A stretch of DNA of 64,000 bases from Eukaryota sp. TZLM1-RC (Eukaryota; Protista; Metamonada: BaSk clade): NCBI GenBank assembly GCA_040285825.1, contig JAUPSS010000007.1, forward strand, positions 2,082,689 to 2,146,688, given 5' to 3'. The number at the start of each line of letters is the position of its first letter. The stretch's first letter is position 1. Below the pieces are notes generated by a model. The model made no database searches. It was not told the DNA's origin and saw only the letters and a list, made by a program, of their open reading frames with translations. A program made the translations under genes and the position numbers. This document shows positions 1 to 46,200 of this stretch, one piece after another.

Positions 1-4
1 AAAT

Positions 5-5008: not shown

Positions 5009-5156
5009 AAGAACAAAAACACCTTCCACAGGTGTTCTTTGGGCAGATCGTCCTTTTGCTAAATTAAAGGTCGACACAATTGGACCTCTGAATACTGATA
5101 GTGATGGTAATAAATACTTATTAGTATTTGTAGATTCTTTTACTGGGTATTCAATT

Positions 5157-6188: not shown

Positions 6189-6286
6189 TGCTAATTCTCA
6201 GTTTAGATTAGGTTATTTGTAGTTATTTAGTTATTTAGTTATTTGTTTATAGTTTAGATTCATATTTATATAAGCCTATTAGCTCT

Positions 6287-6304
6287 GAAAAAGGGAAGAA
6301 GCAG
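6287..6304 (+). promoter_or_regulatory. Polypurine tract of copy A
   Basis: GAAAAAGGGAAGAAGCAG directly before the LTR TG; equivalent tract at 13062-13080 on the minus strand. Confidence 0.85.
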
Positions 6305-6385
6305 TGTTGGCGCCCTAAGGCTTTTATAATATGAATAGAAAATAAATTATCTTTATCTCAACCACTTTTGCAACCTAAGGCAACA
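6305..6385 (+). repeat. 3' LTR of copy A (81 bp)
   Basis: TGTTG...CAACA ends, internal AATAAA; near-identical reverse-complement copies at 12981-13061 and 19849-19917. Confidence 0.93.
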
Positions 6386-12899: not shown

Positions 12900-12980
12900 G
12901 ATATCTGCTGAAGATATCCTCTGAATGAAAAGCTGTAAGTTTTTAAATAATTAATTAATTATTGTATAACCAATAATTAT

Positions 12981-13061
12981 TGTTGCCTTAGGTTGCAAAA
13001 GTGGTTGAGATAAAGATAATTTATTTTCTATTCATATTATAAAAGCCTAAGGGCGCCAACA
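12981..13061 (-). repeat. Single LTR shared as 5' LTR of copy B and 3' LTR of copy C
   Basis: PPT of C on one side (13062-13080) and leader/gag of B on the other. Confidence 0.92.
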
Positions 13062-13173
13062 CTGCTTCTTCCCCTTTTTCAAAGTTAATAGGCTTATATA
13101 AATATGAACTAAACTATAACAAATAACTAAATAACTACAAATAATCTAAACTAATCTAAACTAAGAATTAGCA

Positions 13174-16100: not shown

Positions 16101-19100
16101 AGGGGATTGTTAGAGGTTTACAATCGATTCCTTTTCTGTTTGGAGTTTCACTAAAAACATCGCTGAAAATTCCTAGTAGACTCGTTAATATTAATTTATT
16201 AATATCATCATCTAATTTTATCTCACAACCAGATCTAGTTAACTGCTCCTCAAAATCGGAAGGACTCGATGATTGGCAATCTAAGGTCCCAATCGAATGT
16301 TGAGCGATTCATGAGTCAAATTCAGATTCTGCATTTAACAAAGTACTGTGTTCTTTGTCTAATCTCATGAAAAGACCATCATCTGTCTGAAGCCTAAGTA
16401 TTTTTGACATGTCTATCCCTATTAATAGTTTGTTCGAACCCGGGATTATGGGAAGAGTATGTCTATAATGTACCTGGTGCGCAGTGCTTCCTACGTTGAA
16501 CGACAGAATACCATTTGCACTCCCTAGCGATTTACTTGATACGTTATTGGCTGGTAAGAACTCAATTGTATCATCTCTATTAATTGACATGTTGCATTTG
16601 TTAGCCAAATCTTCTGTTATAACCGAACAAAACGCTGCCGAATCAATGGTTGCAATCATTTTTATATTATTTATTAAAATCTCCAATCTTAGAAATGGAG
16701 AACACTGGGATCTGATGTGGTTTTCACTAACCGTAGAATTTATACCAAAAATACTATTGATATCAGAGCTGGGTTTGTGGAATTGTAGAGGATTTAGTAA
16801 GAATTGTTGAGCTGTTGGGGAGTTGTTGACTGGGTTTCCGAAATCGGCAATTAATTGATTATGATTGATTGCGTTGATTTGTTGCCGATTGGGAAAGTTC
16901 CTGTGTTTCTGACCCTGTTGCTGAAACGGTCAATCCGTCTGTGAGAGGTCATGCTCGAACTAGCTGACACGTTCTCAGAAGGGGATGATGTTGATGATGT
17001 TTCATCTTGTGTGTTTATGTAATAAATAGGTCTATACTGACCTCTACCTTTATGTCCTCTAAAATGGCCACCTCGACCCCTACCTCTAAACCTAGATACA
17101 CATCTACCACGGCCACCTCGGCCTCTAACTACGCTGCCACTTCTCGCAGGCTGATCAGCCTCGCCGATCTTAAACCTTAATTCTTTTGGTACCTTGCTCC
17201 TGGTACAGCGGGGGTCTTTACATTCAAAAACCGTGTGACCAATAGAGTCATTTTCTTCGGTGACGTTGCAGAATGTACAAAACTTAGATCCCTCCCGTTC
17301 ACGTCTTTCTGGGACATATTTGTTTTGGGGAGTTCCTTTGGATCCGCCTCCCGAGCGACGTTTAGCACCTGGACCAGATGGAATTGCTCCTCTAGAGTAC
17401 GTTCTCATGGTCGAAAGGCCTAATGGAATATCTTCTTATCTTTCAGCTTGTTTTCTCAAAAGTTCCATGGTGTGCCTATTTCCTGTTGTTTGGCACCAAG
17501 CTAAAAAGTGTCTTCTGGTGGTCTAAATCAGGTTTTACAAAGTTGTACCTGTTGAAGGGTCCCAGAGATCTTCTCTTGTCCAATGGCTTGCCAGCTCTTT
17601 GGTAATGGCGGAATTATCTATACCCAAGCGAAAGTATTCTGCAATGAGGGCGGGTGAGAGGGTTATTAAACCGCTGCTTCCCCTAATTGATACAGATATA
17701 GAGTGATCAACCATGTAAGTGGTCATCCTGAGGACGTCTCCAAAATCTTCGAACCTACCAAATTCGTTGTCCGCATCCATTTTGTTGTGGATGTTTCTCC
17801 AATTAATACAAGGTTTTGCTAGGGCAGAGCAAGCCTCATGATATGAGGTAAATTGTGTCCTGCGTAGCAGAAACACCATTAGATCTGCGTCTGAGAAGTC
17901 CGGTCTCAGAAGTCCTTGGCCTTGCCATCTAGAGATGAGATGGGGGTCAACCATGCTTGATAAGCCGGACGGACAAGTACTAATCATCATACTTCTAAAC
18001 AAGTCATAATGATGAATAGGAGGTCCCAGACGTTTCGTCAGTTGTGGATCGATCCTTAAAAGTGGCTGCTTCATGTCCCTATCGATTTCTTCTCTGATGT
18101 GAGATGGGAGTGATGATAACAACTCAGGGGTAATCTGGGTCTTTCCTTCGCCAAATATTTGGGTTGCTATCAACATAGCACGAGACCAATCAGATTGACC
18201 AGGGGCTTGGAAGCTTCTATAAGCTATCTTACATCCGTATTTATCCCATGTTTGGAACTTGAGGAGGAAGGAGACGAGACACATCTTGTTGAGTGGGTCT
18301 TTCTCAGATAGGTGAGGAGCTTTGTATTCAGCTGACCTAGGCTGAGAGTCCACATGTCTCTGAAGACTACTCGCTATACTCATGTCCAATATATTTCTTG
18401 AAGCTTGGAGGTCTTCCAAACGGAGAGGCTCCTCAGAAGAAACTCTTCTACGAGGGGGTTGAGGAGGAGGTGTTTCATCTAAACTAGGTCCTCTCAACTC
18501 GACTTCGTCTTCTGATGCACTAGTGAGCATAGGTTGGGAGGAACTTGATGGTTCCTGAACCACTCTGGTAGTTCTGTTTACTCGTTTTGTTACATCTACT
18601 GTTGGGATGTGGTCAAAAAGTACATCGATAGAACAGACTTGTACCGGTTGCTCCCTTTCTGATATTAGGGGGGCAATTACTGGAAGTTTAGGTCTCTGGT
18701 GGAGCTCTGTTGATTGATCGCCCGCGACCAAGAATCTGAACTTCTTCTTCCTTGTTGTAGATTCCCCGAATTGCTGAATAAAGTTATTTGGGCGGCTCCT
18801 GAATGTGGATACGCTTGAAATTTCCGTAAGTATATTGTTTAGGGCGTCCGCGTCAAAGAAGTCGCTGACGGGATCCAACTTACTTGGATTTGTGCTGTCT
18901 GCTTGTTCCATGTATTCTCTGAAACAAGTAGGAGCCCCATCCTCTACCTCTGAGTAGTTATGGATGATCGTATCAAAGTACGAGTCCATCCATGCCGGTA
19001 ATTTGGTTTCCAGGATGTCGTCGGTATCGGTTCTGCTCCTTCGTTCGATGGCTAAGAACCTGATCCTTCTCCCGAACTGATCTAAATGAATGGCTTCCCA

Positions 19101-19767
19101 ATCAGGCCTATCTTTGATAGGTTTTGCCAGAATCACATGGATCTCTCTGTCCATACCGGTTATCCTAGGACGGCGTTCTGCCCCGCGTCCATAGGTCTCT
19201 CTACTCAAAGTGTCCAACGCGTTAATGAGTTCTCTTCTCTCATTTTGAGGGAATTCGTAGACTCTATTAGGGTCCCCTTTATGGCCCAGAGTCTGGAATC
19301 CCACATTTCTACCAGATTTTGATATTTGTTTCCAAAGGGGAGGGAGCTGCTCGAACAGACAGTAATCTGTTGGTTCAAGGTGAGCTTCCGCGTCCTTCGT
19401 TATCTGTTGGCGAAGTTCTTTCTCTTCGTCGTCCATTTCTTCTAAGACGGACTGAAGTTCTTCGTATTCCTTCAGAACAAACGAAGTATCTGAGCTTGAC
19501 CCAACATTTTTGTCTTTAGGTGAGGAGAGGGGTGGTCCCGTTCCTGAAACTTTCTCTGGTTTGTTGGACTTGGAAGAGGCGGGAGGTGGTTCCGTGCCTG
19601 GTTTCTTTGGTTTCTTTTGAGGGGGATGGGGGGGAGGGTGGTCTCAAGCCCGAATCCTCACTCTTTACTTCTTCTCCTATTGTTGTGAATGTATTATATG
19701 CATCTCTGTCGTGCTGTTGCATGAAAATCTTAAAAGAGTCAGTGTCCTGGCCAGGAGAGACTGACAT
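13174..19767 (-). pseudogene. Disrupted gag-pol of copy C; integrase frame 13174-14502 still open
   Basis: ORF pieces 19516-19767, 17535-19436, 16851-17408, 16309-16686, 14917-16044 and 13174-14502 align to A. Confidence 0.92.
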
Positions 19768-19848
19768 GATATCTGCTGAAGATATCCTCTGAATGAAAAG
19801 CTGTAAGTTATTAAATAATTAATTAATTATTGTATAACCAATAATTAT

Positions 19849-19917
19849 TGTTGCCTTAGGTTGAGATACAGATAATTTATTTTCTATTCATATTATAAAA
19901 GCCTAAGGGCGCCAACA
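19849..19917 (-). repeat. 5' LTR of copy C (69 bp; 12-bp deletion between GGTTG direct repeats)
   Basis: Matches 12981-13061 except for loss of CAAAAGTGGTTG and one substitution. Confidence 0.9.
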
Positions 19918-22416: not shown

Positions 22417-22698
22417 ATTCTTAGCATCTTTTTTACCATAATCACTCATTAGTATTGAACTGTCTTTTGGGTTACTAAATTGCTGCACAAGATTTTTCAA
22501 CAACCAACTTTCAGTCTTTTGGTTGTGAATAACAGCTTGCATTTTATGAATGCTTCCACAAGTCAAGACTGTAAAAGTCAATTGTCAAAAAAACTTGCCG
22601 AAGTTTGGCAACCACAAAGTTGGAAAAATTTATAAAAGTTGCTGAATTGGTGGCAAACGCAAATAATTCGGTGTTTGCATCTTCGATTGTCATTTCGT
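22417..22698 (-). pseudogene. Internal fragment of the same Fanzor family as 35908-38940
   Basis: EMTIEDANTEL...QVFLTIDFYS...HKMQA...KTESWLLK...DYGKK, nearly identical to about 38310-38590, with one frameshift. Confidence 0.9.
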
Positions 22699-24992: not shown

Positions 24993-27058
24993 GGGACAAC
25001 ACCAAAATCCACACGTACCACAATTTTTAATCAAAATCCACAAACATTTTTCAAAGTAATTTTCACAATCCACATCATCCAGAACCTGTGATGAAAATCC
25101 ACATATGACGTGACCCAAATCTTTTCAAGTTGGTTGATCAAAATCATCTTTATTGAACACCTCTATTCAACTGCTTCTTATGAAACAATAAACTATTGAT
25201 TAGGACAACCTCTTTTGTTATGGTTTACTTCTCCACATAAACCACACTTATAAATGCGTTTCTGAGCTGGCTCTAATGAAGTTTGAGATCTTCTGGGCTT
25301 ACTTCCTGATTTTTTCTCTCTTGCATTCCTCATACGAACTTTCTTGGGTCTGCCCACTCTCGGCTTGGCAATTGGAGGTCCGCTAACATTTACTTCCGGT
25401 GCTCTTTCATCAGATTCAACGTTACTCTCCAACGTAACATCATCAACAGATAATATTCTCCCCTCGTAGGCACGTAAATACCATAAAGAAGAGTGCTGTG
25501 GTGCACAGTATTCAATTCCTCTTGAACCGTTCCTTGTCAAAAACATCAGCAAGTGAGCACATGGAATTCCTTCTTTCCAATCACAGCAACTACAACTCTT
25601 TTCCTCAATATCAACGTTGAACACTCTACCACTGTCTATGACCTCAAACTCATCGTCATCAACTTCAATAGATCTTAAGTCACGCAACAACATCAACCTC
25701 TCCTCAAGAATCTTAACAGCTCTTGGAACTAAAGGGAATTCAATCATTGCTCTTGCTTCTTTTCGTCTTGATACAAACCATCTTCCAAGCATTGCTCTGA
25801 TACTATCAAACATTTGAACAATAGGTTGTTCTCTGGCTTCGTTGATAGCAGCATTGAGTGATTCCACGACGTTACTTGTGGTATGTCCCCACCTGTTTCC
25901 AGGAAAAATACACTCGACCCAATGTTGAGGATCTGCCGTCTTCTCGATATATTCCGCTGCCGTCTGTGAGACAATCGCCATTTCTTTTAGAATATCGTTG
26001 TAGTCATTGAGATTTTTTGCTTTTGCTAGTCGAAAAATAAAGGGCCTAGCTTTTTTTGATTCTTTACCTGTTGCATTATCAGCAAGATGATTTACACACA
26101 ATGCATGAGGACATCCAGGAAGTACAGCCTCCACTGCATTGATCAGACCTTTTTGCCGATCAGAAATGATTGAAGTACATGAGATAACAAATATGTTGCG
26201 AAGATGATCTAGAAACCACGACCAAGTTGCTGTATTTTCAGTATCAACAACTCCAAACGCTAGAGGGAATGTCTGTCCATTTGCGTCAATTGTTGCAGCT
26301 ACCAAGATTGTTCCAAGATACTGATTTTTGATGAAACAGCCCTCCAACTCGATCACAGGTTTACAATATTGCTGACCAGTAATGGATGCTGAAAACGCCA
26401 AAAAGCAACGACTAAAGCGATCATCATCACCTGCTTCAACAAAAGCCACAGTTCCTGGCATTTTCTGTTTCAAACGTTCGAAGTAACGAGGTAGTAGGCT
26501 GAAGGACTTCTCCTTGTCTCCTTATAACAACATTTGTGCTTCTTTTACCACTCTAGAACATGCCTTATGATTGATTGGCATGTCAGACATCCTTTGCATT
26601 CTAGTTGGAGATACTGGTCCACAACGTCTGAAATCCTCTTTCAACATAAGAGCCACAATTTTCGCAGGAACGTGATTTTTTGATTGTGCTTGACAAGGTG
26701 TGTTGTGCTCCACGAACTTCGTAACAATCCAAACATCGCAATCAAGAGGGGACGTAGCAATAAAACGAAAGGGACACTTCTCATCATCACACTTGATTTC
26801 CCAGCGGGTCTTGTTGTTATTTTGAGCAGGAGAGAACTCTTTGTTGATTTCAATACCATATTGATGCAGAGTTGTTATCATTTTGTCACGAGATTCGAAA
26901 GTATCGTTCACTGAGATGGATATAGGTTCAGAAGCTTTAAGTTTATTAAGATTAAGAGCAATAGTCATTTTTGTGGTTTTTGATGAAAAAGATGGGACTA
27001 ATGTTGCTGTGGATTTTGATGGAAATTGATTTAATCATGTGGATTTTGGTGTTTTCCC
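24993..27058 (-). mobile_element. MULE/Mutator DNA transposon
   Basis: TIRs GGGACAACACCAAAATCCACAC / GGGAAAACACCAAAATCCACAT; 9-bp TSD ATAATTTTA (24984-24992, 27059-27067); subterminal AAATCCACA repeats. Confidence 0.95.
25193..26968 (-). pseudogene. MuDR-type transposase with one in-frame TAA (26522-26524)
   Basis: N-terminal C-x4-CPF zinc domain, DANGQTFPLAF, ISDRQKGL, TSNVVES, SWIM CSC...PCAH, C-terminal CCHC. First catalytic D appears as E (LEGCF). Confidence 0.9.
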
Positions 27059-29115: not shown

Positions 29116-29218
29116 TCCATTGTATGGTGGAGAAAGACCAGTATACCCACAAAATGGAGGTAAAGAAGAGAAAATGAACAGACACCAGATTTATAAATTG
29201 TAGAACCCCATTAATGTA

Positions 29219-29491
29219 CTGTGAATTTCACTTATCATGCATTCCCCTGTGAAATTCACTCCTGTTTTCTACTTTCACAATATCTACTCACAGGCTGTAA
29301 GAGACATGTAGCATCATTTGACAAAGACAATCATGATCTTCATCAATGGGCTACCTCACTTAAATACACCTACTGCTTTCACAGAACAAAGCCTCGCGAC
29401 TTGATGTATCTAAGTGGATCTACCAAATGCTACTAGGGCATTTGTAGATCGGTCTCAAAAGTTTTTGTTTCTGTATGCTCAGGTTCCCCAT
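29219..29491 (-). ncRNA. Putative Fanzor omegaRNA scaffold / element right end
   Basis: Directly downstream of the Fanzor stop; several long stems; conserved in the second copy at 53633-54203, with homology ending at ...CAG(T). Confidence 0.72.
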
Positions 29492-31442
29492 TCATCTTCT
29501 CAACAGAGCATCTGGGCAAATGTATTTTTCCGGCCACAATTCCGCTTTCTTCTTAATTTGAATATTTTTTGCAGCGGAAATATCTCTGTCATATACTATT
29601 TGACACTCAGTACAAATACGCATCTGCCATGAGCCTGCTTGAATATTCTCGGCCATGCAACAACTTGACAGTTTGCTTGTATTAAATTCACTGGTTGACA
29701 AGTGCTTCACGTCCTTTTGATAACACAACCATTTTCTGAAAGCCCTTGCTGATCCATATCGATTGACTTTTCGGCAATGAGAAGGGAAATTAGCAGAGCC
29801 CACAGCAAGATAGAGTTTTTCAGGATGTCCAGCCAGCCTTTGAAATTTGCTGAGACTCTCTCTGAACCGTCTCTCTTTTCGTCTGCGGTTATCAAATTTA
29901 ATTATTTTCCATTTCTGGCGATTACTTTCCAAATACACTTTCCTCCTGACCAAATTCCAATGGTTCAAATATTGGTTGAAATTTTGAACGGAATATTGGT
30001 TGGGAGAGTGTTTACTGGGTGAAGGTTTTGTCATGTATCTTCTGCCAGTTGCACAAGGGATAACTCCACATTGATTATCATTTAAGAAGTAACCACATAA
30101 TCTTGATTGGCCAAGGTCAACGCCGATAAGGGGCCTTTCAGGTAAAATTTCGACTGGATGTCTACGTCTTCGACGGGGCATTTTTTTAGTACCCTTCAAC
30201 TGTTTTTCTCTGGTTTTGTTGGCATTAGGGTCACTTTTCATTTCATTTTTTGATCTTCTTTTCTTTTTCGGTGGTTCATCCAGCTCATCTGTGTTTTCTG
30301 AGTCATTATTTTTACCTTCAAAGGTCAAAAGCAGTTCATTATTATTAGTTTTCAATAAAATTTTGTTAAATCTATTTTTCAAACTTTTTCTGTTGATATT
30401 GAATTTTTGGTAAGGACATTGTTTGAATATTCGTTTCAGACATGTATTTTTGATAAACTTTGTTTTGGAAGATGATCCTTCAATAATTGGAAATTTTTTC
30501 ACAGAGTGGAAAATTTGTGAAGGTACCTCAATAAATTTAGAACCTTTATGAGAAGCTAAAGGTATTATTCTAAATTTCTTCCAGCAATGCATATGAGAAA
30601 AGAAAGTGAGTAAGTATTGTGAAATTTTAAGATTGAAGAGAAAAAGCTCACTAATTTCCTTTGATGAAAAAGTGATTTTATCATGTGAGGACAGTAGGGA
30701 GGCAGTGGTAGGAAATCTTTGAAGGAGATTCAAGATATACTTACATGCATTCAATAAAAAGAATCTTTCTCTTGAATTATTCAAATTGAAATTGATGAGG
30801 TATTCAAGAACAGAATCAACTACTACTTCCTCGGGTTGGGCTAGTGGTTCATCTGGCAAAAGTGAAAGAATATTATTTGCAAAGACATTTGTTTTATCAA
30901 GAGCTCTACAATGAGCACGAATAAAGTTTTTTGTCCAGGATTGACAAATTTTAGGTAAACTAGTCTTCACATTAGACGCCAATTGACGAGCCCGACATGC
31001 AAGGTAAGGAGAAAGCCCTTTTCTATTGACAAAATTACAATTCTGAGATTGCAGCCAAGCATTGAGAAAAAGATTTAATGAATTTCTGTAAGGCACTAAA
31101 GAATTTTCCCACAAAGAAACAAGAGACCCGTCTTGTGGGCATTCAGGAAGAAATCCATTGTAAAAGATATGGAGTTATTGGCGTTGGCCTTTAGATGTGG
31201 AAGGCTTAGGAAAAGAACCAGTGGTGATGACGGTCATAAACAGATACCATACATCCTGTTCCACTAAAGCTCTAGACGCCAACGGAAAATTTAGAAGAAA
31301 AGATTGAAGTAATAAAGAAGCTTCATGACAAATCTCGGTGACCACAGGAAGGTCAGTCCGAATTTGTTGCACCGCTGCAGGGGTCAGCAACGAGTGCACA
31401 AGACCGAGTGAATACACGTGACATAGAGTGGGTGTCTGTCAT
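29492..31442 (-). pseudogene. Fanzor (TnpB-like) nuclease; RuvC D-E-D intact in the 540-aa frame, N-terminus broken by an in-frame TAA (31175-31177) and a probable frameshift near 31392
   Basis: LIGVDLG, SEFNTSKLSSCC, CTEC...DRDISAAKNI; NLS-like PPKKKRR; ORF 31175-31417 is in the same frame as 29492-31114. Confidence 0.88.
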
Positions 31443-31636
31443 GTAGTGAGAATAAAGAGCTCATCTATCAAATTTTACACTTGTCACCCCATTTTCGACT
31501 TCTAATTGCCTGTTCTGGGAGGTTTTTAACCCTCAACTTGGTTTTGGGAGGTTTTCACTATTCCCACACTTTCCCGTCACTTCATAAACTAGGTATCCTT
31601 TGTAAAAGTTTCTGGAATTTCAACTCTATGTAACTC

Positions 31637-33133: not shown

Positions 33134-35275
33134 GTGATCGATCAGGCAGTAATTAGTAGTCAGGAAATTTCTATTGTTGGTTTAGAATTCATTTGTGGTT
33201 ATTATCTGCATCTTTCTTACTTAAAACCAAAAGATGCTTTACCAAAAATTCAAAAGCAATTATTTCGTGACGCTTTTGTTGTGGTCACGTCTCAAAGTGA
33301 GGAGGAATGTTCCCTTAACGCAAAGACAAAAACAGCTTTTCAAAATTCTCGTTGTGAATCATTGTTGGAATAATATCTTTAACACTGAATCTAAATTTGT
33401 TCCAAAAGTTTTATTTAAAAAACTAAGTAATATTTTGCACTACACAATTGACAAACTGATTGTAAATTTCAAAATCATCATCCAACAACATAACTTGGAT
33501 TGGTCTGTTGGTATAGTCTATAATGTTAAGAGAAACAATAACGTCCTGAAAATACAGGATAAGAAAACTTTTCGTCGTTTATTAGTAAAGTTAAATCTCT
33601 ATTTTCTAGAAGGAAGTAGAAATATTGATGGTGAACATCTACAAAGAGAAAAAGTCTCGTCGATGAGTTCACTTTTGATTAATGGCCATATCCCTTATTT
33701 TCTTCCCACTTCTAAAAAGGAAAAAGATTCAAAGTTTGATTTTTCGTCAAAATCAAATATGTATTTGAGAGCAATGTTTTATATTAATAATTATTTAGAA
33801 GATTAGAAGAGCAAACTCTTTCGTGCTCTGCCTTTGATTCCCTCCTATATCAGAATTGACAGGACCAGTGTATTTGACATGTTCTTTGCCGAAATGAAGG
33901 GCATTCTTGGTCAGAAGTCGTCCAACCAATGTATTAATCAAGCTGCTGGTTTGGTTTTACGGAACACCATTTTGAGATGGACGATATTAAAAACACGAAA
34001 CTTTATTCAGAGAATTCAAAGTATTTCATGCCTAGCATCGAGACTGATTTAATAGCAGCATTATTCATTTAATCTAGAAGGGTCTTGAAAAAATACAAGA
34101 TTTCTACAAAAGAATTGAAAGATAAAGAAAAAAATATTGATGACCCCAGTAGAAGTCCTTCTGAATTTCAAAATATGACCCTTGTTGCTGCTGATCCAGG
34201 GAAATTTGATCTACTCTATTGTTCTGCCAATTTAGCTACTGGAATGACTCAGTCAATAAACCTGAGAGAGATAAATATGTTCATTTCAGGTACACTCAAA
34301 ATCAACGAAGATTTGAGTCAAAAAAGTCCAAATTAAGAAGAATAAGAGACAGCATACGGAATGACACTCTTATCACAATAACTAACTCTGCTGGTAGAGT
34401 GATTGATTTATATAATTATGAACCATCTGAAGAGCAACATCGAAGGATGGAGTCAAACAGCCGCATAATGAAAAACAATAATTCTTAATAATAATTATAA
34501 TTTTTTTATAATTCCCTGCCTTTAATTTTCCATTTCTTTACGCTTTGGTTATGCTATTCAATCCAGATGAGGATTTTCAATGATATAAGGTTAACGTATC
34601 AGATTCACAAAAACCAGTGCTGTATGGTCATATGTTTGGCTTAAGTTGTTGCATACTTCCTTGAGCATGAATCATGTGTACAAACAGCGTTGGAAAAACC
34701 CTCTTCTTCTACTGTCATATACCAATTCCAAGCTTAAAACGATGCTGATGTTTCTTTTCTAATCAATGTTGTGAACTACGACCCTGTCCTATATAATGTG
34801 GTTATGAAGCATGAATTTACCATTTATTCACAGTACTTAACAAATTCAAAATTAAGTTGTTTTGCAGATCGTCTACAGGCTGAGGAACCATCCATACTGC
34901 AGTGCCAATCGACTTTTGAATAATCTTTAGTCAATTAACCATGTAGTTTTGTCTTATTTAGTTGTTTAGTTGAAATCTCAGATTGTGGCCTACTTGTTTT
35001 TTATAAATTTAATCCAATACAATACAAAGTTAATCTTCTGATTAAAATCGTTGTTTCTGAGATCCTCCTCGTCTTGGTAAAAGCTGAAGGTGTCAACTAT
35101 CTATCGGGAAGTTGATGGTGAAGTTAAAGTTCACAACGCCTATTTCACTTGGACCGAATGTAATCAAATTTGGTCTAGAGACATTTCTGTATCACTAAAT
35201 CAGCTAAAATTTGCAATTAGTGAGCACTACTATGGAACAAGACCAGAAGCGTTCCAGAGACCACAAAGACACTAG
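33134..35275 (+). pseudogene. Decayed Fanzor of a second family, with unrelated sequence at about 34420-35050
   Basis: FRALPLIPSYIRID, RuvC-I LVAADPGKFDLLY, FRYTQNQRRFE, RuvC-III WSRDISVSLN...RPEAFQR; many frameshifts. Confidence 0.8.
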
Positions 35276-35424
35276 CTTCAAAGCTACCTATTGTTCTAGA
35301 TGAGAAATGGCCTCACTGAGATTGGTGGCCAATTATTCGAGGATTCTAGAACGTTTAAGGACAATCTCACCAAGGATGGAAGTTGTTGGAATAAGTTTGA
35401 ATGATGCTTGACGAAAGTATGCAT
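35276..35424 (+). ncRNA. Putative omegaRNA remnant with pseudoknot topology
   Basis: Interleaved complementary pairs and a terminal GAAA-capped hairpin immediately after the Fanzor stop. Confidence 0.5.
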
Positions 35425-35907
35425 TTAATAAAAAATATTAAATAAAAACAAAAAATGTATGCATTTCAAATGAAAACCACAAACAGTTAACAAAATTCAT
35501 TGAATTGGAGTTACGTTCATCAACATCATCTGAAAGATTCACCAACGAGATAATTGTTAAGGGTAGTGAGAGCAACACTGCCTGGAACATTACTCAAGTG
35601 TGGAATCTTTTTTGAATAACGGTTATCATTATTCAGGACAATTCCACTCAAACTAAAATTTAAGTTTATTTTAAATGATATTTTGTTGTGATAACATTAC
35701 ATTCAATCATGAACACTGTTATGAAAAAAACCGTGTTTTATTTTTAAAGGCTAAAACACGGGTTTATTTCAAAGAACCTAAAGGTAACACATTGGTAACA
35801 CTAATAAAATTTATTTCTGACTCTTCCACTTAACAATTATCTTTGGTTCGCAGCATTCACTTCCATCATGTTTCAACTTCGACTCTTCCACTTAACAATT
35901 ATCTCAT

Positions 35908-38900
35908 TTGATCATGGCAGAAAATGGATCCATTTACAATCAAACCTATCAGGATGGCCATCTTTATCAAAATCAGGACAATCAATTTCTGCCTCCTGAT
36001 CAGATAATTGACAAGATTAGAAAAGATGATTTAAATCTTTTAAAAAGAAAAAATGATGAGGAGTTTGATGAGTGGATTTCAAATCAAAAAGTGTTTTTAG
36101 TTTCAATTGCTATTGGAAGGTTTGATCAACACAACTTCTTTTTGGAAAGTAAATATTCGCTGCTGTTGAAAATGAGTGACCAAATTACGTCTTTACCTCA
36201 AATTGATATGAATGTTCAGGCGGAATTATTTGATAACGAAGAAATTTTACTTCGTAGATTTTCAAATATTATTGGTAATTATCAACCACATTGTTTTTTG
36301 AATCACAATTTAATCAAGTTTGATTTACAAGTTTTAAAGAATCGATTCAATTATTTTGGTTTACCATTTCCCACTGGTTCAGTTGATTCAACAGTGGATG
36401 TACTTAATCATCTTTCACCAAGATGGAGGGAAATTGTCATCAGGGAAAATGGTTTTTATCTTTTAGATACACTGGTGTTTGCAAAAAAATTCATCAAAAT
36501 CCAATATGGTCATAGTTTGGGGAATTTGGCCTACAAAATGATTGATGAGAAGAAAATCAAACTTCATCAACAATTCACCAATATTTTACCTGTTGATTGT
36601 TTAGCTACTACTCCACTGAGACAAACTTTAATTCAATATGGGCTTCAAGATTGTTCACTATGTCTGAAACTTTTCGTGCTGTTTCAGAAAGACAAATTTA
36701 TTTTATCATCTTATAAAACCATTCGAGCAACCGTCAACTCAATGGTCAAACATTCAAATGTGATACGCAAATTGAGAGAAACTGCTGTAAAATTTCAACA
36801 GTTACGTATTCACACCACATGTTGCTTAAAGCTGTATTTACAGTCTTGTTTTGAACGTAATTTGTCATTACCACGAATATCTGCCCAATTATATGAATCA
36901 TTAATGGCCAGAATTCGTTATATTTCAGCTGAGTATTATGGGCAAGAAATGGTGAAACCAAAGAGTGCATTTCCAGAGGATTTTGAAAACTTTGTTTATG
37001 GTGAAGGAGATTATAGATTATCGACCACCTTTGAACAACAAAAGTTGAACAAAACATTGAGTTATGTAGACCATTTGAGATATAGGCCTGAGTTTTTTCC
37101 ACGATTTCCAACTGATGGCTTCAGTAGACCACCTCAGTATATGGCCCCAGTAATGTTTACCAATTTTGAAAACAATTTGAAACTAAATTATGAAAAACAT
37201 ATTAATCGATTTATTAATGTTTACTTTGACAAAGTAGATGTGGAAAATGTGTTAGCAGAAATGCATAAGCTGGGTGGATACTCAACGCCACTGTCTACCA
37301 TTATTTCACTATATAGATTTAGGCTTCGTCAATTCAAAAACTTGTTTTTAGTTGATGATAGAGATTGCTTGAGTTCTTTGTTTCATCATCCTGAAAATAT
37401 TTCAGACCTTCTGAATGATGAATTTTTTGATTTATGTGAACAGCATGATATAAGAGGTAATGAACTTAGAGACATATTTGAAGGTCTTATTGAGCCTTTT
37501 CCTTGCCAAATTGAGAATTTGGTCACTGACGAGAATTTAGTTGATAACATATTTCCAGTGGATATTCATTTTCTTGCAGATGCTGTTGAAAAAGATCCTC
37601 AAATATTCCTAAAACCAACAATTACAATTGCCCAATATATCTCCAGTAGAGAGAAAAAACCTTATCATATTTCTCCTGTTTCAACCACTGTAGGCCCTGG
37701 ATATTTTCCTATTGATACAAGAACAATATGGACAATTATTAGACAAACATTGATGGACGATTTATTGCCTGATCAGAGATTAAAAATGTCCAATACATTA
37801 GCCCAAATTACGAAATTCAAACCACCTCAGCAATTTGACTTTTGGTCTAATATTCTCGATTTAAACCAGCCAATGTTCAAACAAAAGATTTATAAATTTA
37901 ACAACATTATCCACACAGATGGATTTAATATTGCAGTAGAATTTGTTCGTCGGGATTTACAAGATCAGAAATGTAAGCCAGACAACAAGGCTAGCATTTC
38001 TGATTTATATATTGATGATGTTGATGTTGATACTTTTCAAGACAAACGAATTGTTGTTTGTGATCCTGGAAAACGTGATTTATTGTATTTTGGGAGTAAA
38101 AAGACTGATCAAGAACTAGCCATGGTGCCTGAACATGAAACTGAACAGCAAAGAAATAGTCGGGTGATGAATCAAGACAAGAAGTACAAATGGTTAAGAA
38201 TGACTCAGATGTCCTGGTCTTTGAAAAGTAAGATGAATGAAAAGCAAAAACGATGGGCGACAAAGTATACTGAGGTAGATTACGACAGGAACCAGATGAT
38301 AGAGTCTTACGAAATGACAATTGAAGATGCAAACACCGAATTATCTGCGTTTGCTGCCAATTCAGCAACTTTTATAGATTTTTCCAACTATGTGGTTGCC
38401 AAACTTCGGCAAGTTTTTTTGACAATTGACTTTTACAGTTTTGACTTGTGGAGCATTCATAAAATGCAAGCTTTTATTCACAAGCAAAAGACTGAAAGTT
38501 GGTTGTTAAAAAGCCTTGTTCAGCAGTTTGGCAATCCAAAAGACATTTTAATACTAATGGGTGATTATGGTAAAAAAGGTTCCAAGAATTTGAAACATCA
38601 GAGACCTACTCGAGGCATTGGATGGATTCAATTTCTGAAAAGAAATGGATTTGAAGTATTGATGATTAATGAAGCTTTCACTTCAGCAAAATGTCCTGTT
38701 TGTTTTGAAAAGGTTAATACGTTTTTGAGAGTAGCAAATCCCAGATTCTATAGAAGAGAAAAGACTCCTGTTACTACATGTCATGGTTTATTAGCTTGTA
38801 ATAGTCAGAGTTGCAAACTCAGTAACAAAGGCTCAACAAAGCTCTTCAATAGAAATAAGCTGGCTTGTCTGAATATGTTTGCAATTGCTGAAGCGAGGAT

Positions 38901-38940
38901 GAGTGGTAATGAAAGGCCTCAGTATCTGTGTAGTAGATAG
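35908..38940 (+). CDS. PolB-type 3'-5' exonuclease (DEDDy) - Fanzor fusion protein
   Basis: FDNEEILL...NHNLIKFDL (ExoII), LLDTL...HSLGNLA, YGLQDC (ExoIII); then Fanzor YKTIR...IHT..LKLYL, IHTDG, VCDPGKRDL, NEAFTSAKCPVC, HGLLAC...C, FNRNKLACLNM, RPQYL. Confidence 0.88.
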   Translation: MIMAENGSIYNQTYQDGHLYQNQDNQFLPPDQIIDKIRKDDLNLLKRKNDEEFDEWISNQKVFLVSIAIGRFDQHNFFLESKYSLLLKMSDQITSLPQIDMNVQAELFDNEEILLRRFSNIIGNYQPHCFLNHNLIKFDLQVLKNRFNYFGLPFPTGSVDSTVDVLNHLSPRWREIVIRENGFYLLDTLVFAKKFIKIQYGHSLGNLAYKMIDEKKIKLHQQFTNILPVDCLATTPLRQTLIQYGLQDCSLCLKLFVLFQKDKFILSSYKTIRATVNSMVKHSNVIRKLRETAVKFQQLRIHTTCCLKLYLQSCFERNLSLPRISAQLYESLMARIRYISAEYYGQEMVKPKSAFPEDFENFVYGEGDYRLSTTFEQQKLNKTLSYVDHLRYRPEFFPRFPTDGFSRPPQYMAPVMFTNFENNLKLNYEKHINRFINVYFDKVDVENVLAEMHKLGGYSTPLSTIISLYRFRLRQFKNLFLVDDRDCLSSLFHHPENISDLLNDEFFDLCEQHDIRGNELRDIFEGLIEPFPCQIENLVTDENLVDNIFPVDIHFLADAVEKDPQIFLKPTITIAQYISSREKKPYHISPVSTTVGPGYFPIDTRTIWTIIRQTLMDDLLPDQRLKMSNTLAQITKFKPPQQFDFWSNILDLNQPMFKQKIYKFNNIIHTDGFNIAVEFVRRDLQDQKCKPDNKASISDLYIDDVDVDTFQDKRIVVCDPGKRDLLYFGSKKTDQELAMVPEHETEQQRNSRVMNQDKKYKWLRMTQMSWSLKSKMNEKQKRWATKYTEVDYDRNQMIESYEMTIEDANTELSAFAANSATFIDFSNYVVAKLRQVFLTIDFYSFDLWSIHKMQAFIHKQKTESWLLKSLVQQFGNPKDILILMGDYGKKGSKNLKHQRPTRGIGWIQFLKRNGFEVLMINEAFTSAKCPVCFEKVNTFLRVANPRFYRREKTPVTTCHGLLACNSQSCKLSNKGSTKLFNRNKLACLNMFAIAEARMSGNERPQYLCSR

Positions 38941-39015
38941 TGATTGTAATTATTCCACACGAAAATTGATCGTGTATTTATGGGAATTTCCCACAAAAGA
39001 CAGCATCTTTTCCCA
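38941..39015 (+). ncRNA. Putative compact omegaRNA / right end of the exonuclease-Fanzor element
   Basis: Stems ACACGA/TCGTGT, TGGGAA/TTCCCA and AAAAGA/TCTTTT packed in 75 nt after the stop. Confidence 0.5.
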
Positions 39016-39038: not shown

Positions 39039-39710
39039 ATGGAAGATTCACAGATTCCTCTTGATAGCGTGTTAGATCACATTGAAGAAATACCCGAACC
39101 ATCTTCCCCACCAACACAACAATCTACATCAAGAAAGTCTTCTGGGATTCGATGGTTCCTCAACCAGAACCAAGTTGATGTGTCGATGGAAGACGAAGCT
39201 CCATTGCTGGAAGAACTCGACATTGATCTTAAGTCCATTTCTAACAAACTTTTATACATTTTATTACCCTTCAAACACCCTCAGACAGACAGGCAATCAT
39301 TAGTTACAGCTGATTTCTATGGTCCTCTAGCAGTGATATTGCTATATGGATTACTGGTGTTTTGGCATAATTGGAGTTTTGCTGCCCTATCATGGTGCTT
39401 TTTGATCTGGCTTACAGGGTCCTTCCTTGTCTACTTTATCACAAAGGCGACAGGTGCTTCTGTTTCATATGCAGGCACTCTTGGTTTAATGGGCTATTCC
39501 ACTCTACCTTTAATCGTGGTTTACTTTCTCAACCTGTTGTTAACACCACAGTTCTTTTCCATTCTGCTTTCTATTGTTGGGATCTCTTGGAGCTCTTATT
39601 CTTCCGCTAACCTGCTGATAGCCAATGCCCCTGAAAGCAAGAAATGGCTCATCGTTTATCCAGCTGCCATTGTGTTTACGTTTCTACAGAGTTTGAGGTT
39701 GGGAGTGTAG
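39039..39710 (+). CDS. Yip1-domain Golgi membrane protein (YIPF4-like)
   Basis: PLLEELDID, DFYGPL, GYSTLP, YP motifs; about 5 hydrophobic segments. Confidence 0.92.
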   Translation: MEDSQIPLDSVLDHIEEIPEPSSPPTQQSTSRKSSGIRWFLNQNQVDVSMEDEAPLLEELDIDLKSISNKLLYILLPFKHPQTDRQSLVTADFYGPLAVILLYGLLVFWHNWSFAALSWCFLIWLTGSFLVYFITKATGASVSYAGTLGLMGYSTLPLIVVYFLNLLLTPQFFSILLSIVGISWSSYSSANLLIANAPESKKWLIVYPAAIVFTFLQSLRLGV

Positions 39711-39811: not shown

Positions 39812-42097
39812 CAGCGTGGCACCTTTTTGCTTTCGCGAATGAAAAAAACGCACTTTTGAAAAAAACGCATTTTTTTTGTTGATCTTGAGGACCATTTCTT
39901 AAAAGCAAATTCTCATTACTCCAATACCACCTTATCTTTCCTTCTCCTCTTCTGTCATGCCTCGCAAACGAGACATCGCTTGGGATTACGTCATAGAACT
40001 TTCCTGTGATGACTCTGACCCAGATTGTACAATAAATCTTGATTCGCCCGAAGTTATTCCTATTGAAAAAAATTATACACACCAATGTGTTTATTGCTCC
40101 TTGAAGTACACTCCAGGTTCCGCTACGCGCATCAAAGACCATATTGTGGGAGTTCCACCAGGAGAGAGAAGCAACATCTCTGTTTGCATGGAGGCTCCCC
40201 GAAAAACAATAATGAAACTTTTAAATACTCAGCTTGACACACTATCTCCTTCTGCAAAAAAACGGCTATCTTTCATATCTGAAGGTGCTCCTATCAAGAA
40301 AAAACCATTAAATACATTTATTTCTAATAAATAATTGAAAGCCGCAAGAACAGCTGTTGGTGACTTTTTCTATGGCTGTGGAATACCATTGCGCATCATT
40401 AGAAGTAAGTGGTTCTGGAAAATGATCAAAGCAATTGCCGCAGCAGGCCCATCTGTCCAAAAAATCGGTTATAATGCTCTATGTACCACCATGCTCGATA
40501 ACCGTTACAAAGATGCAGTCACAGAAAGAAAAGCAGTCATTGACAACATTTCTGATATTGGATGCACAGTAATGGCAGACTCGTTCACCTCAGTGTCAAA
40601 ACATTTATTGACTGGTATCATGGCATCAACAGGTAACTCGGTAATACATTTGAAAACAGTCCATAACGATGCCGTGTCACAAAATGGTGACTACCTAAAA
40701 CAGGTTTTAGAACAGGTAATCAGTGAATTAAACGGAAAAGTCGTCAACATCGTGACTGACCAAGGTTCTGCTTATGTAAATGCTGGAAGCAGGATCCAGT
40801 CGGAGAATCCAAGCATCTCTTACAACTTCTGTGCATTTCATCTGCTTTCGAATTTCTTTAAAGATGTGTACAAACTACCTTTTGTGCGAGACATCATAAA
40901 AAGAGCTGTTGAGTTAGTAATGTTCCTCAAGAACCACCAGTTAATTTATGATGTTTTGAGAAACAATGGTAGTCGCTCATTGTCTACACCAGGGGACACC
41001 AGGTTTGCCACCAACTGGATACTTTTGGAAAGCTTACTTGGTGCGAAAGATAGTATAATAAGTATTTTTGGAGGGGAAAGCTATTTTGAATGGAGAAACC
41101 GATTATCAAGTACACTCAGGAACACGGCAGACCAATGGAACACAGTGTTACATGGTATTTCACTTTGGTTGGAGTTTGAAGAAATTTATAAATGTTGCTA
41201 TCCAGTTTTGAAGTTGTTAAAACTATTTGATTGTAATACGCCATTGTCCGCAGAAATTCTTTATTTGATAGAAGAGGCTAAAACTGAAATGATTAATTAT
41301 GATGGTATCATTATCACCGACGAGAGGAAGAATCTCATCATTGCATCGTTTGATGACCGAACCAGTCAATTAATAACCGATTTCTACGTTGCTTCTGCGA
41401 TGCTAAACCCAAAAAATTATCTTCCTGAAAGACTCATTTTTGCTGAACGGTTATTTGATATAAGTAAGTTTCAAGATTTTGTGTTAAAAATTACCAGTTA
41501 CGACAGTGATAAGGCACTAGATTTACTGCGTCAATTTTCTGTTTTTCAAAGATTCAATAATCACACAAGTTTTGGAAGGCCCTTAGCATTAGCAGGAAGA
41601 GAGAAAGAAAATTTTAATGCTATGATCTGGTGGCAGCAGTTTGGTTATGACGCACCTGAGCTTCAAAAATTGGCATTACAAGTGGTGTCCCAATTTGTGT
41701 CTGCTTCTGCAGTTGAGAGATTGTGGAGTCTACATGATTGGATTCATTCTAAGCGTAGAAATAGACTCACTGAAGAGCGTGTAAACAAATTAATAGCAGT
41801 GTATGATTTCCTGGCAAGTTGTCTTCAAGAAGAAGATTCTGAAGAAGACAACAAGACGGAAGATTGTATCGAAATATTGAATGTTTGCTGTCAGCTGTTA
41901 GAAGAAGAAGATTGACAGTCCTAGTTTCTAAGGCAATGAACTGATCTATTGTTGGTGTTTTAGTTTTACAATAAATTACAGTTACAATGTGTTTATTTGT
42001 TACATATAGTATAGAATTTCATCCAAATTAGAATATTCATTTGAAAAAAACGCAGCTCTGACGAAAAAAACGCATTTTCGTTGGGGGTGCAACTCTG
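39812..42097 (+). mobile_element. hAT DNA transposon
   Basis: TIRs CAGCGTGGCACC / CAGAGTTGCACC; 8-bp TSD GATTTTTC (39804-39811, 42098-42105); GAAAAAAACGCA subterminal repeats at both ends. Confidence 0.95.
39957..41915 (+). pseudogene. BED finger + DUF659-type hAT transposase with one in-frame TAA (40332-40334)
   Basis: AW...CVYC...RIKDH, ADSFT, IVTD, CAFH, TRFAT, WW...PELQKLA...SASAVERLWS...KRRNRL. Confidence 0.9.
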
Positions 42098-43266: not shown

Positions 43267-46200
43267 CTACCTTTTCCCCTTTTTAGATCTCGAACGAGAG
43301 CTACGAGTACTGATTGCGGGGGAATTAGTCTTAGATTTGGAATTAGAAGACGCCTTCCGTTTCCTGTTAGTGCGAGGACTAATAGAGCGCAAATATGTTT
43401 GATATGCCTCAGTGCTTTTGACGTCAGCAACTGGGACATACGAAGTCTCGTTGCCATTACAAACTGCGGTACAATAAGGAACTTTATTATTATTCGAATC
43501 TACGTAATCAAAATGATCTATAATTTTAACAATTACAGATTCTTCCATATCGCCAGCAGCAATATTCTTATCCCAATCAAGATCTTCCTTAGAAAAGTCT
43601 GAAAGGTTTAGTTTACAATGATTTATACTAGCTGTAGATAACGAGCCAGTGACTAAGTTCTTGAGCAATAAACTTTTATTGGATTTCACTTCTTCAATGA
43701 GAAAAGGGCCAGCGAAGCAACCATGGAGTTTACCATTAGTTTTCAATCGCAACACTAAGTCTCCTATATTAAAAGGATTCCTTTGTAAGTTATTTTCAGG
43801 AAGTTGTTGAGCTTGCCTGAGCTCTGCCTCTTCTCTCTTTCTTGAGATTCTATCAAGTTTAGCTTCAAGGTCTTTAACAAAGGGGATAACGAAATTTGCT
43901 AATTTAATCAATTCAAACAAATTACTAGGATCAGACCTAGGGCTATGATCACTACCAAACATCAAATTGTATGGAGAGTGACCAGTAACTCTACTAGCAG
44001 TTGAATTTATTTGAAGTTGAACAATTGGGATATATTCACTCCAATTGCTATAATCACCAGAGTCCACCAAAATTTTTCTTAGACTTAGTAAAATGTCCCT
44101 GTGACGTCTTTCTACTAAACCATTGCTTTGTGAAAAGCTGGTTAGTGAACGACTTACTTCAATGTATAATAAATCGCATAACCCTTTAAATATGGCATTT
44201 GCAAATTCAATACCATTGTCACTGTGAATTAACAAAGGAATACCAAATATTGCGACAACGTTCCATAATAATTGGTTTGTAGCTTCCACTGCATTTAATT
44301 CCTTAATGGGGCATATGATCGTATATCTCGTAAACGAATCTACAAATACTATTAAATATTTAAATCCATTATCATCTTCCTGTAGTGGACCAATTGTATC
44401 TGCGTTTATTCTTGTAAACGGACGATCTGCCCATAGAGAGCCAGATGATTCGATGACTTTCCTGGATACAGGTGCAGTCTTTTGACAAGCAGGGCAACTC
44501 TTAATATGCATAATCATGTATTTGCGCATGTTAGGCCAAAAGTAATCACTTTCAAGTAATTTCTTTACACTAGTTGTCACGCTAGGATGACCAACATTTG
44601 CATGTCCATGAATGATAGTTAAAGTCTGCTTCTTTAAACTATCGGGGATAATAATCTTTCCACAATTGTTGGTGTATAATTGATTATTTGTATCATACTT
44701 GTAATCTTTGTAATTATCAGGGTTTGAATCAACATCTAACATTTGTTCTTGCCTAATTTTCGAAATCCAAGAGTCAAATAAATCAAATTTCGGATCCTCA
44801 ACAGCTTCTTTTAATGCAGATAAGCTATGAATCGTAGGAAGTTCAACTGTGGACGGTTGAGTAGTATCAACCCTTAACAAGTTAGCCTTAGTTAATATAT
44901 TCAAGTAAGGTAATTGTTCTTCAACTACGTGAGGTGCCAAATTTCTCACTTGTTGGACACGAGGGGCTGAAGGGTTTAGGTTTACTAATCTAGACAACAT
45001 GTCTGCCCAATAGTTCTCCTCGCCTGCTATATGGACTACATCGAAATTGAATTTTGACAATATCGGTAGCCACCTCTTAACAATTCTGTTCTTGTTAGGT
45101 GCTGATATCATATATGCTAGGTTTCTATGATCAGTGAATATTGTTAATTTCCTAGAAATTTAATAATTTTCTAAACTACTGTCAGTGAGAATTAATAATA
45201 TAGCGTACAGCTCTTTCTGAAGTACAGACCAATTCTTTTGAGAAGAGGATAATAATCTGCTAAAGAAAGCGATAGGTACAACCTTTCGATTAATTAGCGG
45301 TGTTGACGGATCTTTGGGTGGGTTTTCCTCTTGCCACATTACTCCACCAACTGCTACATCAGAAGCATCAGCACTTATTAGTACGTGTTTATCTTCAGAT
45401 GGTAGTTCGAGAGGGATGTTTGCCTTGATAAGATTAATAATTTTACCAAAAGCCTCATCTTGATCAGAAGTCCACTTGATCTTTGACGGTTTGTTCCTAG
45501 TCAATTTGTTGATTGGTTCTATCAAGTCAGACAAATTAGGTAACCAGTCACGTATATAAATGATTGAACCTATAAAACTCCCAACTTCAGGTAATGTCCT
45601 TGGTTTAGGTAGGTTAATTAGTCCCTCAATCCTTGTCTCGTCATTATAACGGGTTTTGTTTACAAAAATACTACCTAGAATTTTTATTTTATGTTTGCAA
45701 GTGGTAAAGCTACACTTGGGTAGGCCCAGGTTAACTCTAAAACGTTTAACGCGTTCTAGAACCGTACCTACTCTAGATAGAAATTCATCCAGGGTCGACG
45801 CTACTACTATTATATCATCGATATAAATAAATACGCCCTCAGAATCAAATATTTCCATCATCATGTTTTGAAAGACTGCAGGAACGTTTTTCAAACCAAA
45901 ACAAGCCCTTTTAAAACTGATCGACAAATCCGGGAATTGATACGGTAGTCTTATCAATATCCTCTTCTGCAATTTGGAGCTGCCAAAATGCCTTTGTTAA
46001 ATCTAGAGTCGCTATATAATTAGCTTTACTTAGAAATTTTAAGTTGTCGCTAATCCTGGGCAAATTTGCATCTACAGGTTTAGTTAAATTATTTACTCCA
46101 CCATTACCACTAACATCGCCAGTTAATCGTGGTTTCCTGTGATTAGGGTAAATCACTAGGCAGATGGGACTACTGAATTGAAATTTTGCCGGCACTGCAA

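Follow-up and report, generated by a model that had tools for sequence, protein, structure and literature searches.

An exonuclease-Fanzor1 fusion in a mobile-element family of Skoliomonas, with a damaged copy in Eukaryota sp. TZLM1-RC

Does an RNA-guided nuclease naturally carry a polymerase-type exonuclease on its own polypeptide, or is such a frame an accident of one gene landing in the fragment of another? The question is raised by a 64,000-nucleotide stretch of contig JAUPSS010000007.1 (assembly GCA_040285825.1, positions 2,082,689 to 2,146,688 of the forward strand; hereafter the window) from Eukaryota sp. TZLM1-RC. This isolate belongs, together with TZLM3-RCL and GEM-RC1, to Skoliomonas, a free-living metamonad and soda-lake protist (PMC11316075). 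Direct reading of the sequence revealed an unbroken exonuclease-Fanzor1 frame on the + strand, which ends at 38940 and comprises 1010 aa from a TTG at 35908 or 1008 aa from an ATG at 35914. The uninterrupted 1010-aa frame described in the initial annotation was recovered from the TTG, while the ATG at 35868 that it gave as the start lies in a different frame. The 1008-aa protein is identical to an NCBI gene model and falls in a 42-member protein cluster, whose named members listed are all from Eukaryota sp. TZLM1-RC. The analyses revealed that the fusion of a PolB-type DEDDy exonuclease with Fanzor1 is natural, family-wide and selected, and that the window copy is a damaged member of a Skoliomonas mobile-element family. 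L001 to L011 denote the loci read and P-numbers (e.g. P0157) the homologous proteins, both being labels of the present analysis. The main features of the frame are as follows.

35914..38940, + strand: exonuclease-Fanzor1 open reading frame (ORF) of 1008 aa, without ExoI (sequence and NCBI gene model)
35942..36681, + strand: exonuclease domain (3'-5', PolB-type DEDDy) lacking ExoI, at aa ~10-256 (Pfam PF03104, family profile, model of an intact relative)
36682..38937, + strand: full-length Fanzor1 with WED, REC, RuvC and TNB (sequence matches, model of the relative P0157)

Fusion of a PolB-type exonuclease and Fanzor1 across Skoliomonas families

The Fanzor N-terminal sequence YKTIRATVNSMVK was located at 36712-36750, and the C-terminal part of the window protein matched PpFz1 (E 9e-23) and SpuFz1 (E 3.5e-21), with a weak Pfam match to the TNB zinc finger. 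The RuvC triad consists of D717 (RuvC-I, 38062-38064), E920 (38671-38673) and, as third residue, N981 (38854-38856), and the zinc finger of a CxxC at 38692-38703 and a CxxxxC at 38797-38814. The Fanzor N-terminus and the full RuvC/zinc-finger C-terminus that had been recognised from the sequence are both there, with the D-E-N triad intact. A RuvC rendered inactive by the Asn at the third site was ruled out: the D-E-N triad is active in GtFz1, a D606N substitution even increases the activity of SpuFz1 (PMC11423790), and the Asn is fixed in the Skoliomonas fusion clade. Several traits of a Fanzor1 are present, namely a TnpB-like RuvC, a C4 zinc finger and the Fanzor1 WED/REC fold, in a eukaryotic, multi-copy, mobile element with a conserved right end.

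The N-terminal part contains ExoII (NHNLIKFD, 36301-36324, with D137) and ExoIII (YGLQD, 36637-36651, with Y242 and D246), exactly where the initial annotation had placed them. The window protein matched Pfam DNA_pol_B_exo1 with 29.6 bits against a gathering cut-off of 23 (E 6e-7), and an Atlas search likewise assigned the exonuclease to PF03104. The N-terminal part showed a weak match to E. coli Pol II, and the exonuclease family profile matched Pol delta best (E 2e-11), followed by Pol II, Pol alpha and herpes polymerase. No Pfam match to the polymerase palm (DNA_pol_B) was obtained in the window protein or its relatives, and palm, fingers and thumb were not found, so that the absence of a palm noted from the sequence stands. 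To judge from these matches, the donor of the exonuclease is a family-B polymerase.

Since a single-sequence AlphaFold model of the window N-terminus reached a predicted local distance difference test (pLDDT) of only 35, the fold is described from residues 125-1096 of the intact relative P0157, modelled with AlphaFold2 from a 65-row alignment (pLDDT 82.5; predicted template modelling score 0.69). Residues 8-256 of the model aligned to the exonuclease domains of Pol alpha, delta and epsilon and of Pol II (Z 17-18, root mean square deviation (rmsd) 2.5-3.2), and residues 259-972 aligned to residues 18-631 of SpuFz1 (Z 27, rmsd 3.6). PpFz1 and GtFz1 aligned as well, the Fanzor1 matches overall reaching a Foldseek E of 1e-29 and a VIA Z of 22-27. 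The model is wholly accounted for by exonuclease and Fanzor, of which the first ends at residue 256 and the second begins at residue 259. According to these alignments, the Fanzor is complete and the exonuclease joins its first WED strand with essentially no linker. In both sequence and structure searches, the nearest exonucleases were DNA-polymerase proofreading domains, Pol delta first. The two domain assignments of the initial annotation were borne out in this way, the exonuclease by a profile match above cut-off and by the PolB-type fold of the intact relative, and the Fanzor by its matches to SpuFz1 and PpFz1 and by the same model.

The initial annotation had allowed that the in-frame junction might be unique to this locus; it recurs in other TZLM1-RC copies and in divergent families. 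Four other TZLM1-RC copies, at ~90% DNA identity, share it, several of them broken by frameshifts or inserted retroelements. A scan of 1.84 billion representative proteins, with follow-ups, placed the fusion in at least seven families across the three Skoliomonas isolates: a divergent family of TZLM1-RC (P0174/P0177), the TZLM3-RCL families P0007/P0157/P0156, P0209/P0165/P0230, P0019/P0158, P0027/P0162 and P0058, and a GEM-RC1 family (P0038/P0210/P0212). The divergent families are 25-56% identical to P0157, and direct reading found the junction in one frame in the window as well as at L006, L009, L010 and L011. All of the traceable retrieved proteins with this exonuclease domain (69 of 69) come from Skoliomonas. 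No Fanzor with the exonuclease domain from outside Skoliomonas was present among the best 150 of 1203 HMMER hits from the same 1.84 billion representatives, nor was the fusion found outside Skoliomonas in protein searches, the HMMER scan or a metagenome scan, these searches being word- or length-limited. In the 2027-aa gene model P0156 (TZLM3-RCL), an exonuclease-Fanzor copy is combined with a DEAH helicase; the helicase part probably reflects an insertion into or beside a host helicase gene and not a trait of the family.

The catalytic motifs of the exonuclease are conserved across these proteins. Of 43 parsed homologues, 41 retain an intact ExoI DxE, the ExoII Asp and the ExoIII YxxxD are nearly invariant, and at the level of the family ExoI DxE, ExoII NxxxFD and ExoIII YxxxD are all present on an RNase H-like fold. 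The ratio of nonsynonymous to synonymous substitution rates (dN/dS; Nei-Gojobori) ranged from 0.16 to 0.27 in the exonuclease and from 0.12 to 0.27 in the Fanzor, among close copies and between two TZLM3 families, which indicates that each of the halves is under purifying selection. A single very distant pair reached 0.46, an unreliable value with saturated dS. The spacing between the ExoIII Tyr and the Fanzor RxHT is equal in six families and one residue less in the seventh. Separate trees of exonuclease and Fanzor recovered the same two subfamily groups, with the deeper forks open. In a quick RuvC tree (midpoint root only, outgroups picked by similarity, rows lacking motifs excluded), the six Skoliomonas rows fell on one side of a branch with a Shimodaira-Hasegawa-like approximate likelihood ratio support of 100 and 41 other Fanzors on the other. 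This RuvC tree would fit a single origin of the fusion, though it is no proof of one.

It could be argued that a Fanzor landed by chance, in frame, in a polymerase fragment, or that the fusion is an artefact of gene models, and many database models of these loci are indeed broken or joined across frameshifts. However, the one-frame junction was read directly from DNA in the window and in the four further loci named above, and it is common to families only 25-36% identical that are under purifying selection. This family evidence refutes a chance fusion, to which we assign a negligible probability.

Loss of ExoI in the window copy

While the family retains a complete exonuclease motif set, the window copy does not, and its 5' region contains the following features.

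35819..35904, + strand: exact direct repeat of 24 bp, with copies at 35819-35842 and 35881-35904; an inverted partner of 18 bp lies at 35544-35561 (repeat search)
35855..35916, + strand: decayed pre-ExoI segment, reading T-I-I-S-F-D in a frame other than that of the ORF, with the ExoI Asp codon GAT at 35910-35912 (collinearity with TZLM1-RC copies)
35917..35941, + strand: 25-nt insertion within the ExoI D-x-E codons, which splits the Glu codon and has no GT/AG ends (alignment to L001, L003 and L004)

In relatives, ExoI reads C-F-D-L-E-T-Y-Q-D-G, whereas the window ORF starts with M-A-E-N-G-S-I-Y-N-Q-T-Y-Q-D-G. The codons of the ExoI DxE lie at 35910-35943, outside the frame of the ORF and split by the 25-nt insertion, which brings the ATG at 35914 into frame with the remaining gene; the DNA upstream is decayed. 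Segment 35855-35916 is collinear with the pre-ExoI DNA of the family and ends on the Asp codon: in comparison with L004, 5 of 500 shuffles scored as high (p about 0.01), and L001 gave the same placement, not significant alone. Motifs of the T-I-I-S-F-D type occur only 3 times in the six frames of the window. The direct repeats and their inverted partner mark this as a rearranged 5' region. Rescue of ExoI by splicing was ruled out, as the 25-nt insert is without GT/GC-AG ends and the upstream frames contain stops and indels. Also ruled out was a clean 5' truncation at 35942 accompanied by a 4-nt target-site duplication, as the upstream DNA is collinear with family pre-ExoI DNA and such duplications are not enriched over nine copies.

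With the ExoI Asp and Glu out of frame, the four acidic metal ligands of the DEDDy site do not stand in one frame in the window copy. Because two of the four ligands and the first core strand are missing, its exonuclease is probably dead; the Fanzor half, which is without any break, may still work. The nuclease with its own exonuclease that the initial annotation proposed is thus real for the family, in which the fusion is shared and selected, and does not extend to a working exonuclease in the window copy. The particular contribution of this copy is that its frame runs unbroken through the junction and its RuvC is intact.

The two halves of the window copy also differ in their relationships. 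Compared with L001, synonymous divergence (dS) was 0.57-0.79 in the exonuclease (35942-36680) and 0.135 in the Fanzor (36680-37640), and the exonuclease is 95% identical to P0182, a fragment of another subfamily. By these sequence comparisons the window copy is a mosaic, with exonuclease and Fanzor body from different subfamilies, which suggests module swapping near the junction.

Element anatomy and proposed role of the fusion

Comparison of copies placed the right end of the element at 38993, 53 nt past the stop codon: the copies agree up to this position and then diverge. Two features of this region are proposed.

38912..38993, + strand: predicted omegaRNA scaffold, the 5' limit of which is a guess, together with the right end; it covers the final codons and two hairpins, one at ~38958-38976 and a terminal one of 5 bp at 38981-38993 (copy comparison)
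38994..39008, + strand: predicted guide, the first ~15 nt of the 3' flank (analogy with SpuFz1)

In five families, whose end sequences are unrelated, 47-56 nt separate the stop from the end, and in four of these five the end carries a terminal TGG...CCA hairpin, against a background of 1-5% of random positions. Of the hairpin-rich 75-nt tail that had been described from the sequence, the hairpin is the part that recurs; the tail itself is only 53 nt, the remaining ~22 nt being flank, and its folding, at z -0.9 to -1.5, is not exceptional. Right ends folded modestly better than shuffles (z about -0.4 to -2.0), the consensus fold across families contained a weak 4-bp stem only, and an Rfam search of the right end gave no match. 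The omegaRNA of SpuFz1 combines a 75-nt scaffold with a 14-15-nt guide derived from the flank (PMC10432273). The guide predicted here had no exact second match within the window or the fetched loci.

A guide copied from the flank raises a first candidate role for the exonuclease, that of maturing the omegaRNA by trimming its read-through 3' end to the 15-20-nt guide protected by Fanzor. Many DEDD nucleases are RNases, and no terminator separates the element end from the gene that begins 45 nt further on. Fanzor guides do arise by read-through into the flank and need trimming (PMC10432273). Nevertheless, the closest relatives of the exonuclease domain are DNA proofreading domains, Fanzor1s of the ordinary type process their guides, in yeast too, with no comparable domain, and the guide 3' end would lie far from the WED attachment point. 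We regard guide maturation as rather unlikely.

Upstream of the exonuclease, most families carry a class-A 2A motif and, after it, a basic segment resembling a nuclear localization signal (NLS), and several also carry an Ulp1/C48 protease. The initial annotation missed this upstream design of 2A peptide(s), optional Ulp1 protease and basic NLS-like linker. The 2A (or StopGo) motif (defined in PMC12338488) was found in frame upstream, as GD(V/I)ExNPGP, in P0024, P0215, P0165, P0211, P0174 and P0177, L007/L008 having two sites, and in variant form in P0027, P0058 and P0162; it was not seen in the P0007/P0157 family and is absent from the window copy. The order is leader-2A-Ulp1-2A-exonuclease-Fanzor in L007/L008 and leader-2A-Ulp1-exonuclease-Fanzor in P0236 and P0230, and in no family examined was a 2A seen between exonuclease and Fanzor. 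The 2A sites would usually release the exonuclease-Fanzor from a polyprotein. The leaders before the first 2A are highly variable, with a signal-peptide-like start and PNPTT repeats or low-complexity repeats (L007:7690-9150, L008:8052-9958, L009/L011, and the N-terminus of P0215). One 2A-Ulp1 cassette type precedes different exonuclease-Fanzor families, a cassette being shared, for example, by P0058 and P0230.

A polyprotein with 2A and Ulp1 may be read as a counter-silencing toolkit, and the genome region is dense in retroelements. An exonuclease in such a kit could be active but independent, degrading for instance competing or sensed single-stranded DNA (ssDNA) or cDNA and thereby suppressing rival elements or responses of the host, so that the fusion would only co-deliver both to the nucleus. 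Against this, the junction has no linker and an invariant length that has persisted over more than 60% sequence divergence, which speaks for physical coupling, and independent action appears quite improbable.

As regards movement, many copies have lost part of their 5' side and kept the 3' end whole. The elements read encode no transposase, and no terminal inverted repeats, T-rich target or RepHel partner were recognised in the 11 loci. Target-site duplications were not enriched in nine copies, the 5' ends of several being uncertain (mean match 2.4 nt versus 2.2 nt in mismatched pairs, permutation p 0.27). Spread by copying of donor flank is unsupported, as the 3' flanks differ between all copies. 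Pieces of non-LTR (long terminal repeat) retroelements lie inside the 5' part of copies (L003:8187-12389, L004:8882-9977, L007:9154-9915), and tandem or LTR-type inserts split the Fanzor part in L001, L008 and L010. The exonuclease could serve this movement, e.g. by trimming flaps or ssDNA intermediates together with a helper transposase, with Fanzor merely as tether. The 5'-truncated copies with intact 3' ends resemble those of the Helitron2-type CRe-1/2/3 Fanzor families, P and piggyBac elements are known to carry DEDDh nucleases as separate cargo (both PMC3627910), and the Ulp1 protease is likewise cargo of the polyprotein. On the other hand, the 2A sites part other cargo from the exonuclease-Fanzor in most families and never the exonuclease from Fanzor, the junction is constrained in length, a linked helper transposase is lacking, and target-site duplications show no enrichment. 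We consider a role in movement unlikely.

The role that we favour, at about an even chance, is that the exonuclease trims 3' DNA ends at the guided cut. A single ORF would yield, usually after 2A skipping, a basic NLS-like linker, a DEDDy exonuclease and a Fanzor1. The omegaRNA would be transcribed from the right end into the flank, and Fanzor would locate a target-adjacent motif (TAM) with flank-matching DNA, typically the empty site, and cut there. The exonuclease, preferring ssDNA as proofreading domains do, would then shorten the freed 3' ends, most plausibly that of the displaced non-target strand; a displaced single-stranded 3' end is the preferred substrate of proofreading exonucleases. 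Clean re-ligation would be blocked, and repair would be biased to copying of the element-bearing chromatid (restorative homing) or to deletion of the target. In SpuFz1, the non-target strand is cleaved 16-17 nt from the TAM (PMC10432273), and a free displaced single-stranded 3' end would therefore be available. Trimming that blocks re-ligation and favours templated repair or deletion would fit restorative homing, which is the general OMEGA model (PMC13565253).

Several points weigh against this role. The exonuclease sits at the first WED strand, on the TAM side, whereas the cuts are TAM-distal, and it may not reach them. The omegaRNA on which the model relies, covering the last codons and the tail with a guide from ~38994-39008, is predicted by analogy. 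No transposase partner or excision event, as restorative homing requires, was identified in the loci read. A 3'-5' exonuclease removes, and does not create, the 3' overhangs needed by homologous recombination; for the same reason, the end resection suggested in the initial annotation does not apply in the sense of homologous recombination, which needs 5'-3' degradation, the opposite polarity.

Taken together, trimming at the cut and the element design would describe a natural two-nuclease RNA-guided effector of eukaryotes, in which a rigidly docked exonuclease processes the ends of the effector's own guided break (or its guide) and steers repair, and which is set free from a virus-like polyprotein containing 2A and Ulp1. 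We give this combined view roughly equal chances of being right or wrong; under it, the element would fit no described transposon superfamily and its leader-2A-Ulp1-2A-exonuclease-Fanzor design would be unclassified. Selection has preserved the fusion in families that share less than a third of their residues, and intact natural versions exist, such as KAL0210696.1 and KAL0213088.1 of Skoliomonas TZLM3-RCL, making the effect of end-processing for an OMEGA element directly testable. It bears on what Fanzors do for eukaryotic transposons, where breaks are often simply re-ligated.

Surroundings of the locus and comparison with known systems

The window is rich in other mobile elements. A second, unrelated TnpB/Fanzor-like gene occupies 29216-31610 (- strand), with an ORF at 29492-31114 of 540 aa, a TNB match (E 2.6e-6) and a canonical DRD third motif; its ~2.4-kb element is multi-copy and about 91% identical to L003:2879-5286. 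A decayed third Fanzor-like sequence lies at ~33234-35426 (+ strand), with ADPGKFDLLY at about 34180 and frameshifts; the final 328 nt of it (35099-35426) are found again, at 91%, in L003 and L004. An internal fragment of the exonuclease-Fanzor family at 22417-22698 (- strand), beside retroelement pieces, is 91% identical to 38309-38589. Positions 1-19917 contain ~6.9-kb Gypsy-type LTR retroelement repeats, tandem and inverted, 95-97% identical. The locus is flanked by a MULE transposase (25193-26473, - strand), a hAT transposase (40335-41915, + strand) and a second Gypsy element (43267-45972, - strand). Either transposase is conceivable as a helper, and nothing links either to the Fanzor. A Yip1-domain host gene (39039-39710, + strand) starts 45 nt past the right end of the element, and the predicted guide therefore falls in its upstream region.

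Both parts of the fusion are known families, and the combination appears undescribed. The word exonuclease is absent from the main texts of a 2026 OMEGA review, the TnpB/Cas12 classification paper, Saito 2023, Jiang 2023 and Yoon 2023, and the Skoliomonas genome paper does not mention Fanzor. A keyword search of the literature returned engineered fusions, other natural DEDD fusions and DEDDh transposon cargo, and no Fanzor- or TnpB-exonuclease fusion, in agreement with the initial impression that the architecture was unfamiliar among described Fanzors.

With the known Fanzor1s SpuFz1, PpFz1 and GtFz1 (PMC10432273, PMC11423790), the Skoliomonas family shares the WED/REC/RuvC/TNB fold over residues 18-631 of SpuFz1 (Z 27), the catalytic Glu beside the zinc finger, the D-E-N triad of GtFz1, a short structured right end after the stop and a multi-copy mobile element. 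Unlike them, it has a ~250-aa PolB exonuclease directly on the first WED strand, an ORF that usually derives from a 2A polyprotein, often with Ulp1, a stop-to-end distance of 47-56 nt and no recognised terminal inverted repeats. With the proofreading domains of family-B polymerases (Pol delta, alpha and epsilon, E. coli Pol II, HSV UL30; PF03104) it shares the DEDDy motifs ExoI-III and the fold (Z 17-18), but palm, fingers and thumb are missing, a charged helical insertion follows ExoI, and the C-terminal helix leads into Fanzor and not into a polymerase. The non-autonomous Helitron2-type CRe-1/2/3 and the MCi-2 Fanzor1 elements (PMC3627910) are similarly Fanzor-only, with 5'-truncated or variable copies, constant 3' ends and terminal hairpins; no exonuclease is reported there, and the variable target-site duplications of CRe were not detected in the nine Skoliomonas copies compared, nor was a linked RepHel in the 11 loci.

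Engineers attach exonucleases to Cas9, Cas12f and similar editors to raise efficiency or alter deletion size, and the Skoliomonas fusion is a natural counterpart. TREX2, one of the exonucleases so used, is a DEDD 3'-5' enzyme too. TREX2-SpCas9 (PMC13370227) and T5 exonuclease-Cas12f (PMC12337685) are reported likewise to tether an exonuclease to an RNA-guided nuclease in order to alter repair; these are artificial and joined by a linker, whereas the Skoliomonas fusion is natural, rigidly joined and selected. The Cas2-DEDDh CRISPR trimmer-integrase (PMC10284694) is reported to be a natural DEDD exonuclease fusion as well, in an RNA-guided immunity system; there, the exonuclease sits on a prokaryotic, adaptation-stage integrase, and in Skoliomonas on the guided effector nuclease itself.

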